Positions 10,641 to 15,501 of a DNA stretch of 64,000 nucleotides are shown here, piece after piece. The stretch lies in the sequence record OR413578.1. One strand, 5' to 3'. Below the pieces are notes generated by a model. The model saw only the letters and a list, made by a program, of their open reading frames with translations, was not told the origin of the DNA and made no database searches. Made by a program: the position numbers and the translations under genes. Each line of letters starts with the position of its first letter. Position 1 is the first letter of the stretch.

Positions 10641-10647
10641 GTCACTA

Positions 10648-10673
10648 GGCGTACTCTCTTCGGGGAGTACGCC
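10648..10673 (+). terminator. Intrinsic terminator with UUCG loop
   Basis: GGCGTACTCTC-TTCG-GGGAGTACGCC followed by T-rich sequence. Confidence 0.8.
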
Positions 10674-11260
10674 AATCTTATTTTTTTATTTTTTTGGTTA
10701 CTTTTTAACCAACCGGTTAAAGGGGTCTGGGAAGCATCAGAAAACGATTAGGTGGTATCGATGTAGGGTAGCTCGTTTTTGGCAGTTTATCGTTTTCTAG
10801 GGTCGGTTACGTGCGTTTTAGAGGGGGTAATGTATCGAGACAGAGAATTTATTTTTGTCGGGGCGAGGAAATTCAGGGAATGGGGATTCAGGATTGTATG
10901 TTTTTTAACCAGTTATTAAAAACGCTCTAGAAAGCGCTAGAACGAGATTTAACTCAGACCCAGTACACTTGGGTTCCCTATACCGGAAAATCGCGCCAGC
11001 GGGCCGCTGAGAGCGCGAGAGTGCCATTCCCGTTTCGGTTCCGAGGTGACGGTCGCGGCCGGCGACGACGATCACACGTTGGGTAGCACTTCGTGCCATG
11101 TCTGGGTGAAAACTGGATCGTTCTGTAACCGACACACACTGTCGGTTACTTACGAGTTCTTTGGGTTGTTTAACTCGCTCTAAAATCCCCCTTAGGGGAT
11201 AATTTAATCTAATTCTCAAAATTTCTTTTTAAAACAATCACTTAGATTGTTTTTTAGATT

Positions 11261-11482
11261 GATCCTGTGGATCGGGTCGAAGACCCTTTCCTTATACGCG
11301 TGCGCGTGCGCACACCCGTATCCTCCAGGATCTTTTAAAATATATAATAATATTAAATATAATAATACCTTTAGGTATTATATTTAATTATTATAATTAT
11401 TTATATAAATAAATATATTAATATATTAAGATCTTAAAACGCGTGCAGGCGCGCGCGTGATCCTTATTAAGAGATCGTGATC
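11261..11482. other. Origin-like element: ~96% AT core flanked by 7 GATC sites
   Basis: 11333-11429 has 4 G/C in 97 nt; GATC at 11261, 11270, 11329, 11430, 11459, 11473, 11479; internal inverted repeat ATAATACCT-TT-AGGTATTAT. Confidence 0.5.
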
Positions 11483-11519
11483 GGACGGAAGACCGAGATT
11501 GTGTACCCTGTGTATTTTT

Positions 11520-12340
11520 TACGTGGTTTACCTATCGTGTGTTCAGACCACCACTCGATGTCCAAAAACCCATAGCTTCGGTGGTCGCCTCCCTGGTCGG
11601 TAGACTCTGACAAGTCGACCCACAACACCAACCCGTCCGGGGACGGATTTTTATTCCAACGACAAGCTCCACGAAAATCCCCGCAGAGGGACTCACTGCT
11701 GTGTGACTCACCGGCTCCTGGACGCCTACGCCTCGAGCCGGTAATTTTTTGATTACGTGAGTTTGTTGTTATATGCGAATAGCGATTGACCGCGCCAATG
11801 GTCCAATCACTTTTAAACCCTGCACGCTAGGGCTCCAAGTCCTGGGACTGTTACCCAGGACGCTTTTTCGAAAATACCTACCGTGGTGTCTTCGACAAAG
11901 CGCAATCTAACACTGCGTGATTTATTATGTTCTGGAAAACTTTCGCCGTGGAACAGAACCGGTGAGCGTCGGCGGGGATTCCGACAATCACCACCCATTC
12001 AGGTACTCGGTAAATAACCGGGCTATCGGCTTAAACGTCGAGGGCCTCGTTGGCACTGCAAGCGCCGGTGCATCCAGGACCGAGTTAGCCGTGGCAGCTC
12101 CAGAGGACTGGGCAGCGGAGAGACGTCGTTGAACTTACCTCCGATAGTCAGTCGCTGATTCCGCTCTGGGGTGCGGCCAGATTAAAATCGAATTCGGCGT
12201 TGCGTCGAAGCGTGGGTCTGCGTGTAGAACCGCAGACTTGGGGGATGATCTCCAGATGGAGGTGGTCAAAATATCTTGACTGCTCGGAACAGACGAGAGG
12301 GGTGGGTACTCCCGTTGTGAAACGCCAGTACCTGGCTGAT
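11520..12340 (+). ncRNA. Candidate long structured non-coding RNA region (strand uncertain)
   Basis: No convincing CDS; more than a dozen hairpins, e.g. ACCGGCTC/GAGCCGGT, GTCCTGGG/CCCAGGAC, GTCTGCG/CGCAGAC, CGTT-GTGA-AACG, long-range GCTATCGG/CCGATAGT. Confidence 0.45.
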
Positions 12341-12393
12341 TAAAATTTACAGATTCTGCGTGAGGTATGATAAACCAAACGGAGAATTAAACC

Positions 12394-13550: not shown

Positions 13551-13626
13551 GGGGGTATGGCGCAATTGGTAGCGCACCGGTCTCCAAAACCGAAGGTTCG
13601 AGGTTCGAAACCTCGTGCCCCCGCCA
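13551..13626 (+). tRNA. trnW: tRNA-Trp (CCA)
   Basis: Full cloverleaf: GGGGGTA/TGCCCCC acceptor, GCGC D-stem, loop CTCCAAA, T-arm CGAGG-TTCGAAA-CCTCG, encoded CCA. Confidence 0.95.
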
Positions 13627-13933: not shown

Positions 13934-13935
13934 AC

Positions 13936-13953
13936 AGTGGGCTTCGGCCCACT
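13936..13953. terminator. Hairpin with UUCG loop (terminator or stability element)
   Basis: AGTGGGC-TTCG-GCCCACT right after the stop codon; no clear U-tract. Confidence 0.55.
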
Positions 13954-14207
13954 AACCCTATTCGAGCCGTGATACTTACTCAGATTGTGCGGGTTGATGT
14001 CCCGCATGAGCCGGTAGCAGCTCAGACCTACGGTAGACCAATAAATCCGTAGCAGCCAGGTACACAAAGCACCAGGTCGCTTGTACAGGATGCTGGGTAT
14101 CTGACCGGTCATAACCTCATTCGATACGAGACACGTTTATGCATGAAATACTCCAGTACATCAGGATGTTGATTTCCAACGTCCGGTTCTGGGTATTCAA
14201 TCATGTT

Positions 14208-14332
14208 TGGTTTACAGGCGATGGGTTTTCCCGCAAGGGCCCCACTTACAGACTGGCGTCTCCACGACAACCGTCCCTAGGGGACAGGCAAGCACCGGCC
14301 CATTAAGCCGCCACGCTACGCCTGTAAATCCA
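14208..14332 (+). ncRNA. Candidate 125-nt structured RNA ending in CCA
   Basis: TTTACAGGCG (14211-20) pairs with CGCCTGTAAA (14319-28); internal CCC-GCAA-GGG and GTCCC-TAG-GGGAC hairpins; possible pseudoknot. Confidence 0.5.
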
Positions 14333-14714
14333 CAATCTGATAACCGAATGGGATTGAGTTCCCAGTGTTAGGGTGACTGTGTGTCACCGTAGGCGCGGTA
14401 CCTCATACGGCCGGTACGCCACGAATGTACGTGATAGCGGGTGGTGCTTGGAGGCGCTAAGACCTGACCTTACGGCCAGGCTCAGAAGAAGAAGTCCATC
14501 ACCCGCATTCAGAAATGAATTTAGGTTAATTATTATTTATGGAAGTGATGAAATCGTTTACGTGATAACTTAGTAGTATGCAACGAACAATACCAGAGTG
14601 ACTTTACGAGGTTACTGTGGTATATGTCGGTGCTCCGGGCAACGTGTTGCCGCAGATAAGCCCGAGGGAGCTGAGTGCACTAACACACGCCGGGATGCAC
14701 CGGCACCTTACAAT

Positions 14715-14796
14715 GGGAGCGCTGTCACCATCAGTGATGACTGGAGTGAAGGATTCGTACCTCACTCGACTGGGCGGAAGCCTGGGCGTTCCCCCA
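14715..14796 (+). ncRNA. Candidate four-way-junction tRNA-mimic RNA ending in CCA
   Basis: GGGAGCGCT/GGGCGTTCCC closing stem, three internal hairpins, 3' CCA. Confidence 0.45.
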
Positions 14797-14977
14797 TCTT
14801 CACATCATGGCCGGCTTGCCGGTTCAACGTAGACGTCTCGTAAGAGATTTCCAGTCAGGCAACTGATAACACACCTAAGCGTCGACCTGGACGTATGGTG
14901 TCTGGTTAAGTCCCCCGAAACGGAAACCAGTAGGGGTGTGGTACGTTGAGTGTAACTATCATGATGCCATGAACAAT

Positions 14978-15047
14978 GGCTTTGTAGCTCAGGTAGGTAG
15001 AGCAACCTCTTCGAGGAAGGTCGCCGGTTCGAGTCCGGTCAAAGCAA
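14978..15047 (+). ncRNA. tRNA-like element with truncated anticodon arm (pseudo-tRNA)
   Basis: Acceptor GCTTTG/CAAAGC, D-arm GCTC..GAGC and T-arm GCCGG-TTCGAGT-CCGGT are intact; anticodon arm is 13 nt (ACCTCTTCGAGGA) instead of 17; no CCA. Confidence 0.75.
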
Positions 15048-15128
15048 GAGCAGCGAAGTTAGAGGAATTAACACCCGACTCATAATCGGATATTTCGACG
15101 GTTCGAATCCGTCCGTTTGCTCGCCCCA
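15048..15128 (+). tRNA. Atypical tRNA with CAT anticodon (Met or Ile2) and a bulged acceptor stem
   Basis: Anticodon arm CCCGA-CTCATAA-TCGGA, T-arm GACGG-TTCGAAT-CCGTC; acceptor GAGCAGCG/CGTTTGCTC pairs only with a bulge; 3' GCCCCA. Confidence 0.65.
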
Positions 15129-15131
15129 TTT

Positions 15132-15413
15132 GTGTTACCCTTATCCCGAAGGCATTCGAATTAAGACGCGTATCCACACACGGGTCAAGGGTAACACGAA
15201 CCACTTCCGCGGTCACCGTGTCCATTGCCGCCTACCTGCATGGGCTGTCCTCCGACACGGTGACTTCGGGCCAACTTACAGGCCAGGGCCGTTTGGGTTT
15301 TTCTTACGCATCCATCCAGAGCCACCTCGCGCCCTAGTCTGTATACCCCTTTTCTGTTCCTGGTTTGCCAACTAAATCAATTAAGCCTGGTGCGTTGCCC
15401 TGGGAACAGAAAA
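15132..15413 (+). ncRNA. Three stem-loop modules, each closed by a perfect 11-bp stem
   Basis: GTGTTACCCTT/AAGGGTAACAC (15132-15197), GTCACCGTGTC/GACACGGTGAC (15212-15264), TTTTCTGTTCC/GGAACAGAAAA (15350-15413). Confidence 0.5.
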
Positions 15414-15501
15414 ACTTATTCGGTTACACACCGAACCCACCCACGAGGGATATGTCGTGGACTACCAATAGAAGCAGCAATAGTAGTAAGAAGGAAGCAA
15501 C

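Follow-up and report, generated by a model that had tools for sequence, protein, structure and literature searches.

An anticodon-less, tRNA-shaped RNA is conserved next to tRNA(CAU) in SPN3US-like jumbo phages and their relatives

Why would a phage keep a tRNA-like gene that has no anticodon loop? The question is raised by element #1, a tRNA-like RNA of 70 nt encoded by Salmonella phage SPLA1a (OR413578.1), an SPN3US-like member of the genus Seoulvirus with a jumbo genome of 240 kb. Codon supply and escape from tRNA-cutting defenses are the usual explanations for phage tRNA genes. Neither use is open to element #1 in the ordinary way, but it has kept its shape across three genera and has outlasted most of the real tRNA genes beside it. 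No description of it was found in a literature search; genome papers on these phages give 'one tRNA' or plain tRNA counts, and reviews of jumbo-phage RNA biology are silent on it. The window analyzed here is a 64,000-nucleotide stretch of the SPLA1a record, and window coordinates are record coordinates.

Anatomy of element #1 and its surroundings

Element #1 was delimited at 14978..15047 on the plus strand from Rfam matches, folding and covariation. A tRNA body with canonical arms, an anticodon arm short by exactly 4 nt, a mismatched G1-A72 pair and no encoded CCA had been predicted from the sequence alone, and every detail of that anatomy was found in place at 14978-15047. On the plus strand, the acceptor 5' strand GGCTTTG (14978-14984) is followed by a canonical D arm with G18/G19 (14987-15003), the shortened 'anticodon' arm A-CCTC-TTC-GAGG-A (15005..15017), the variable loop AGGTC (15018-15022), a canonical T arm of GCCGG-TTCGAGT-CCGGT (15023-15039), the acceptor 3' strand CAAAGCA (15040-15046) and the discriminator A73 (15047). 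The arm at the anticodon position comprises 13 nt against the canonical 17, i.e., it is 4 nt shorter. Six acceptor pairs are formed (2-7:66-71) and 1:72 is a G.A mismatch; GAGC, rather than an encoded CCA, comes right after A73.

The Rfam tRNA model (RF00005) aligned with the whole of 14978-15047, apart from four deleted loop positions, and gave 40.9 bits against a gathering score of 29 (E 3.2e-5 for the window); tRNA was the only family to match element #1 in Rfam searches at E up to 10. ARAGORN run on the window called a tRNA-Trp only, with no call at element #1 and no tmRNA. The minimum-energy fold of element #1 was a cloverleaf in which the shortened arm forms a 4-bp stem with a triloop, and the minimum-energy fold of element #1 joined to the adjoining tRNA (element #2, below) was also a cloverleaf. 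The fold energies of element #1 and of element #2 or the dimer were not significantly better than those of shuffled sequences, as is usual for tRNAs. Element #1 lacks the 5-bp anticodon stem with a 7-nt loop (U33, a three-base anticodon and a purine at 37), a Watson-Crick 1:72 pair and a 3' CCA, and its orthologues share no constant anticodon identity. Because it departs from canonical tRNAs in the anticodon loop, the 1:72 pair and the CCA, it is not one of them, and it cannot read a codon.

Element #2, which the original prediction did not mention, is the constant neighbor of element #1. It is a non-canonical tRNA at 15048..15125 (plus strand) with the anticodon CAT at 15081-15083, recognized by Rfam (30.6 bits), folding and covariation. 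Its acceptor stem has 8 bp (15048-15055 with 15114-15122, with one bulged T in SPLA1a) and, given this 8-bp stem, it starts in every lineage at the base right after A73 of element #1, with a spacer of zero. The discriminator is G (15123), followed by CC with no encoded CCA. Among 12 homologues the 8-bp acceptor was 97.9% paired and five of its eight pairs showed compensatory changes; the homologues also have a fixed C27xA43 mismatch and a CUCAUAA loop that is invariant but for one variant. Most copies have a short variable region, and those of ChrisDB and pEa_SNUABM_6 bear a long variable arm. An 8-bp acceptor, a 5-bp T stem, a G discriminator and, in some copies, the long variable arm recall tRNA-Sec and allo-tRNAs, from which element #2 differs in its CAU anticodon and its mostly short variable loop. 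Annotation gives it as Met, Ile or Ile2, or leaves it out. Codon usage in the phage shows no excess of AUA (6.1 per thousand) to explain a tRNA(CAU), which makes the value of element #2 itself doubtful.

The two elements lie in about 1.5 kb (13934-15501) without a credible coding gene, downstream of a small ORF and of a canonical tRNA-Trp(CCA) at 13551..13626 (plus strand), which was identified by both ARAGORN and Rfam. This tRNA-Trp encodes its CCA and is the sole ordinary tRNA remaining in the SPLA1a cluster region. The only annotated feature in 13934-15501 is a 78-aa 'hypothetical protein' (SPLA1a_PHROGS00012; gp263 in SPN3US) at 14989-15225 on the minus strand, antisense over elements #1 and #2. 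An inserted tRNA-Asn breaks up the same stretch in MET_P1_082_240, and this antisense ORF is probably spurious. The proteins neighboring element #1 had no Pfam or PDB match and fell only into PHROGs of unknown function. As a separate observation, the SPLA1a record has another stretch of about 1.75 kb, at 10641-12393, without an annotated gene.

Immediately 5' of G1 is the leader ACAAT (14973..14977, plus strand), and an ACAA-N leader precedes element #1 in most lineages. A 264-nt segment of SPLA1a (14710-14977), flanked by direct ACAATGG repeats (at 14710 and 14973), is missing from SPN3US, and the endpoint of the SPN3US deletion is the exact 5' edge of element #1. The ACAATGG junction motif was not enriched across the window (12 matches against 9.4 expected). 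A scan for sigma-70 promoters and terminators was uninformative; SPN3US-like phages use their own RNA polymerases.

Other structured modules accompany the dimer. Module X (14715..14796, plus strand), which reads GGGAGCG...CGTTCCC and then CCA, resembles a cloverleaf: it has three hairpins, one of them capped by a GGAA tetraloop, and a fold z of -2.3, and it likely shares a transcript with element #1. In the divergent Seoulvirus SPAsTU it is 94% conserved; pEa_SNUABM_29 carries it with a covarying helix, and SPN3US lacks it. Module #0, another tRNA-like module that had gone undetected, is found upstream of element #1 in Machinavirus phages and pEa_SNUABM_29 (L005 1420-1500; L007 1380-1446; L076 1-55). 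Its T arm, GTGG-TTCAACT-CCAC, is accompanied by a 3' acceptor strand; a CCA is encoded, and the spacer after it reads AACAAT or AACAGT. A non-coding block of about 240 nt at 14275-14515 (plus strand), upstream of the tRNA cluster, was compared with its counterparts in L012, Caitlin (L013), phiEaH2 (L015) and SPAsTU (L006). It retains 70-77% identity across genera with long invariant blocks, and RNAalifold predicted 52 pairs, 16 of them compensatory; no Rfam family matched the block, which is a candidate new phage non-coding RNA. Downstream of element #2, two long inverted repeats were seen at 15129-15310 (plus strand), GTGTTACCCTT...AAGGGTAACAC and GGTCACCGTGTC...GACACGGTGAC, followed by a T-rich run. 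These repeats are partly conserved in SPAsTU and may be terminators or more structured RNA.

Conservation, selection and origin

Element #1 is present in about 60 genomes of three genera, and its 70-nt form in some 30 Seoulvirus genomes and three metagenome assemblies. Because it turns up in isolates that are independent of one another and also in assembled metagenomes, with helices that covary from genus to genus, an assembly error is rejected as the source of the shortened arm. The shortened arm is found throughout the Seoulvirus 70-nt form, and no canonical tRNA occupies the site in any relative examined (Seoulvirus, Machinavirus and Erskinevirus), which removes the objection, raised with the original prediction, that a normal tRNA in relatives would expose a recent pseudogene or a faulty assembly. 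Further scans of IMG/VR and metagenomes with sequence patterns recovered only a few additional clade members, and a junction pattern independent of element #2 matched only known members, unrelated tRNAs and other unrelated sequences. Klebsiella phage Eowyn gave a weak protein match without synteny, and it lacks a tRNA cluster. Apparent 53-nt 'inserts' in SPFM6 (LR535905.1) and SPFM9 (LR535907.1) were rejected as artefacts of records that are scrambled in blocks of about 60 nt. These two records look like sequence lines in reversed order, which gives false inserts and BLAST matches in many pieces; the SPFM genome paper provides the correct files through a separate link pending a fix of the accession issue (PMC6614189).

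The center of the element varies greatly. Seoulvirus phages keep the CCTC/GAGG stem, with A or G at position 27; the triloop is TTC in SPLA1a and MET_P1, ATC in Proteus phage 7 and TTT in SPN3US, at >95% identity between the phages. In SPAsTU the body is unchanged and the arm, 39 nt longer, forms a long and very stable rod with a GAAA tetraloop (z = -4.1). Phages of Machinavirus and Erskinevirus, which infect Erwinia and Salmonella, carry recognizable homologues directly 5' of tRNA(CAU) with wholly different centers: a 6-bp stem with a 5-nt loop in pSal-SNUABM-04; a stem capped by an AGAA tetraloop in an IMG/VR contig; a class-II-like form with a long variable arm in Huxley and pEa_SNUABM_6; two plain hairpins without junction linkers, capped by GUAA or a triloop, in phiEaH2, Caitlin, ChrisDB and pEa_SNUABM_29; and one long hairpin in place of both the D and anticodon arms in pEa_SNUABM_10 and pEa_SNUABM_43. 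Four unrelated architectures are thus seen at the center, capped mostly by UUC, GAAA, AGAA or GUAA loops. Depending on the phage, ARAGORN called the homologues Pro(cgg), Ile(aat), '???' or nothing, and annotation gives tRNA-OTHER in SPN3US and tRNA-Asp in Proteus phage 7 and omits the element from most records.

That the neatly re-paired arm and intact elbow reflect selection rather than decay had been proposed from the SPLA1a sequence, and covariation bore this out. Sixteen distinct homologues from the three genera and metagenomes were aligned, and the acceptor and T helices were counted. Acceptor pairs 2-7:66-71 were 100% paired in all 16 and every one of the six showed double-sided compensatory changes; the T stem was likewise 100% paired, with compensatory changes at three of five pairs, giving nine of eleven helix pairs overall. 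The covariation score was reached by none of 500 shuffles, and pairing fell to 21-52% in controls with slid partners. Position 1:72 was G.A in 16/16 and never a standard pair, and A72, A73, G19, G53, T54, T55, C56, A58 and C61 were invariant. The T arm, acceptor 3' strand and A72-A73 (15023..15047, plus strand) form the best-conserved region of the family. Pair 3:70 was C:G or U:A, and neither G2:C71 nor C3:G70 was invariant. From the pairing and invariance results, what is conserved is the acceptor/T-arm minihelix with the D-loop/T-loop elbow, while the center is free. With a covariance model built from the 16-homologue alignment, members of the family scored 62-90 bits and ordinary tRNAs no more than 44 bits; in the window the model found a single copy, element #1, at 90.5 bits.

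The adjacent protein has only 26-35% identity between Seoulvirus and Machinavirus and the intergenic flanks are not alignable between genera, and the shape of the RNA has therefore been kept over deep divergence. The encoded CCA was present in all 36 canonical tRNAs checked (from the clusters of five relatives, tRNA-Asn included) as well as in the tRNA-Trp of the window, and absent from elements #1 and #2 in every case. The SPN3US lineage has lost its Tyr, Gln, Asp, Ile, Glu, Ser and (mostly) Asn genes, which sit just upstream and downstream of the dimer in relatives, and has kept the dimer. These observations indicate that element #1 is very probably a selected, non-decoding, tRNA-shaped RNA.

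Its origin was sought among canonical tRNAs. The best match outside the clade was a tRNA-Thr(UGU) of T4-like phages, with 80.6% identity over positions 8-65 (E about 1e-3). The few E. coli genomes that gave any match did so mostly at tRNA-Thr genes (9 of 11), the other two being tRNA-Arg; none of these matches was significant, and the body of element #1 closely copies none of the core E. coli tRNAs. The gene order in T4-like phages is Thr-Ile(CAT)-Tyr-Asn, compared with #1-#2(CAT)-Asn in these phages. By the covariance model, the nearest canonical tRNA inside the clade was tRNA-Ile(GAU), encoded by the phages themselves, with U1:A72, A73 and, in pSal-SNUABM-04, a D arm identical to that of element #1. 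As this tRNA carries U1:A72, a single U1-to-G change would make the G1.A72 mismatch. The ancestor was probably an elongator tRNA gene of the Thr or Ile type.

Possible roles of element #1

Element #1 has a selected tRNA-like structure, adjoins tRNA(CAU) and has no conserved anticodon. By analogy with other tRNA-like RNAs and dimeric tRNA precursors, we infer that it is transcribed, cleaved and given a CCA end, and that it acts in cis. Selection has retained the tRNA 'top half' (the six acceptor pairs, G1.A72, A73, the T arm and the D-loop GG elbow), with the anticodon arm closed off or replaced. The stack of acceptor and T arm together with the elbow is what RNase P and the CCA-adding enzyme read. 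In the inferred scheme, RNase P would cut 5' of G1 of element #1, and a second RNase P cut, before G1 of element #2, would leave element #1 ending exactly at A73, so that no 3' trimming would be needed before CCA addition; T4 dimeric precursors with members that have no encoded CCA are matured in this manner. The unpaired A72-A73 would serve as a single-stranded -2/-1 leader for RNase P before element #2, and the need for such a leader may explain the fixed G1.A72. The released 70-nt RNA would be a self-folding processing or folding partner in cis, or a punctuation mark, for neighboring RNAs. Besides this hinge-like account of G1.A72, an alternative would have the mismatch prompt CCACCA addition. 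In the latter, element #1 might be disposable after processing, its GG 5' end and weak acceptor end being the known signature for CCACCA tagging. Such tagging of tRNAs with unstable acceptor stems, followed by decay through RNase R, is reported in E. coli (PMC5824355).

We give even chances to the reading that element #1 is a functional, non-decoding tRNA mimic that forms the 5' member of a dimeric precursor with element #2 and is its processing or folding partner in cis. A cis role would be the most likely one, although only moderately so, and some evidence speaks against it. In the Seoulvirus isolates EC001 (L074 136-214) and phage 1252 (L075 149-227) the 3' half of element #2 differs (CCCTGCCACTTGCTC) and its T arm is unpaired, while element #1 is intact; the altered half looks like a recombination scar from the loss of tRNA-Asn, and both disruptions are recent. 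The other tRNAs of the same clusters, moreover, mature without such a partner. A mere leader for element #2 would need neither an elbow nor six covarying pairs and could be deleted, so its retention hints at a function of its own. For the same reason, that a mere leader would not need the conserved elbow, a role in trans for the released RNA stays a serious rival.

Such a role is possible, if clearly the less probable: a CCA-tailed top-half RNA would be a sponge, decoy or handle for a host or phage reader of acceptor ends, T arms or elbows. Candidate targets, no less tentative, include defense toxins that modify or cut the acceptor stems or 3' ends of tRNAs, enzymes that bind tRNA, and a factor for RNA export from the phage nucleus. 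Selection is strong on just those parts of a tRNA that proteins recognize, among them the elbow and an invariant G1.A72/A73 end, the element was kept though nearly all real tRNAs were lost, and it is intact where element #2 appears damaged. The conserved series of non-canonical modules (#0, X, #1 and #2) also exceeds what punctuation would need. Against this stand the lack of any Pfam or PDB match for the neighboring proteins, a body that closely copies no core E. coli tRNA, and the poor block that a stoichiometric decoy would be on catalytic toxins. A broader form of the idea is more tentative still. In it, SPN3US-like nucleus-forming phages would make a family of anticodon-less top-half RNAs (element #1, perhaps module #0 and module X) that act in trans; their roles, on which we are no more confident, might be, e.g., a sponge for defense enzymes that attack acceptor or CCA ends, or a handle for phage-nucleus RNA, with G1.A72/A73 as the mark.

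The remaining readings fit the observations far less well. Phage tRNAs that evade anticodon nucleases are known, and the original prediction offered an uncleavable decoy for PrrC, RloC or PARIS AriB as one possible role, for which an arm without a cleavable loop would be suited. These enzymes recognize the anticodon stem-loop, however, and no target-like loop is present or conserved here: the center takes four unrelated forms, and the triloop changes between TTC, ATC and TTT among near-identical phages. The body, no copy of a core E. coli tRNA, also has no likeness to tRNA-Lys or tRNA-Tyr, its nearest tRNAs being Thr and Ile, and this suggestion has no support and is very improbable. A dead, drifting tRNA gene kept only by its position between useful genes is just as improbable. 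The destroyed anticodon arm, the many tRNA genes gone from the surrounding 1.5 kb and the annotators' habit of skipping the element or labeling it tRNA-OTHER are what such a relic would predict, but drift does not account for 100% pairing with compensatory double changes in nine of eleven helix pairs, nor for an invariant T-loop, G19 and mismatch next to a protein at 26-35% identity and intergenic DNA that cannot be aligned between genera. Unlikely, though slightly less so, is a mimic that is aminoacylated for a non-ribosomal use by an anticodon-blind synthetase, with the 1:72 mismatch keeping it off EF-Tu. Its 1x72 mismatch, G2:C71, C3:G70 and A73 recall the acceptor end of bacterial initiators, and initiator-type ends were the other matches of the junction pattern; yet neither G2:C71 nor C3:G70 is invariant, G3:U70 and G-1 are absent, a long variable arm is not conserved, and no transferase gene lies near element #1. 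Least credible of all is a decoding tRNA of unconventional form. The 13 nt can be drawn as a stem of 2-3 bp with the 7-nt loop UCUUCGA and the anticodon UUC, and the Proteus phage 7 copy is annotated as tRNA-Asp. That drawing, however, would put C at position 33 and leave only two pairs in the stem, the anticodon would switch between UUC, AUC and UUU among phages >95% identical, and other lineages have tetraloops or lack such an arm; the predicted fold, too, closes the loop.

Relation to known tRNA mimics and dimers

The preferred reading, a processing or folding partner in cis, would combine an anatomy of the mascRNA/menRNA type with the position of the 5' member of a T4-type dimer. The mascRNA and menRNA, from MALAT1 and MEN-beta, show that an acceptor stem, a T arm and a GG elbow suffice for RNase P cleavage, RNase Z cleavage and CCA addition, without aminoacylation (PMC11693755). 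Element #1 shares with them the acceptor stem, the T arm and the two D-loop guanines that form the elbow, together with a compact loop in place of the anticodon loop and no conserved anticodon; its class III relatives (phiEaH2 and Caitlin) resemble mascRNA further in having no junction linker bases. The differences are that element #1 is encoded by a bacterial phage, that it lies with zero spacer upstream of a tRNA rather than at the 3' end of a long non-coding RNA, and that in SPLA1a its D arm and variable loop are still fully canonical. The mascRNA model (RF01684) had no match at 14978-15047 at E up to 10, and its weak matches in relatives fell on ordinary tRNAs. The suggestion of a mascRNA-like, elbow-only signal that releases neighboring RNAs has been kept in part: the anatomy fits the features used by RNase P, RNase Z and the CCA-adding enzyme, while the constant partner is specifically the downstream tRNA(CAU).

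In T4, tRNAs are made from the dimeric precursors Pro-Ser, Thr-Ile and Gln-Leu. Some members have no encoded CCA, so that RNase P cleavage is coupled to CCA addition, and the yield of one half depends on whether the other is structurally intact. T4 also makes stable tRNA-like RNAs, species 1 and 2 (rnaC and rnaD), beside its tRNAs. Elements #1 and #2 resemble the T4 dimers, whose units lie 0-2 nt apart, in being two tRNA-shaped units with zero spacer and without an encoded CCA. Both members of a T4 dimer decode, whereas element #1 has no anticodon loop and element #2 has an 8-bp acceptor stem, and the Thr copy of T4-like phages differs from element #1 in its G1:C72, encoded CCA and 1-nt spacer. 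The tRNA-like domains of YrlA and tmRNA, like element #1, mimic the elbow and T arm without an anticodon. The ends of YrlA, however, form a Ro-binding stem where those of element #1 form an acceptor stem, and YrlA matches (RF02553) peaked at 29 bits, far below the gathering score of 69, and lay on element #2 and tRNA-Asn, none on element #1. A tmRNA requires G3:U70 and a tag-coding domain; pair 3:70 of element #1 is C:G or U:A, and neither ARAGORN nor Rfam found a tmRNA.

On the evidence of sequence comparison, element #1 is a real, selected and lineage-specific tRNA mimic, and its role, in cis or in trans, is proposed by analogy. Annotation pipelines name it inconsistently (tRNA-OTHER, Asp, Pro or Ile(aat)) or overlay it with a probably spurious antisense ORF. 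It would be a counterpart, in viruses of bacteria, of the eukaryotic mascRNA/menRNA mimics, and would offer a natural test of how the top half of tRNA is used during infection by RNase P, by CCA or CCACCA addition and by proteins that read the elbow.
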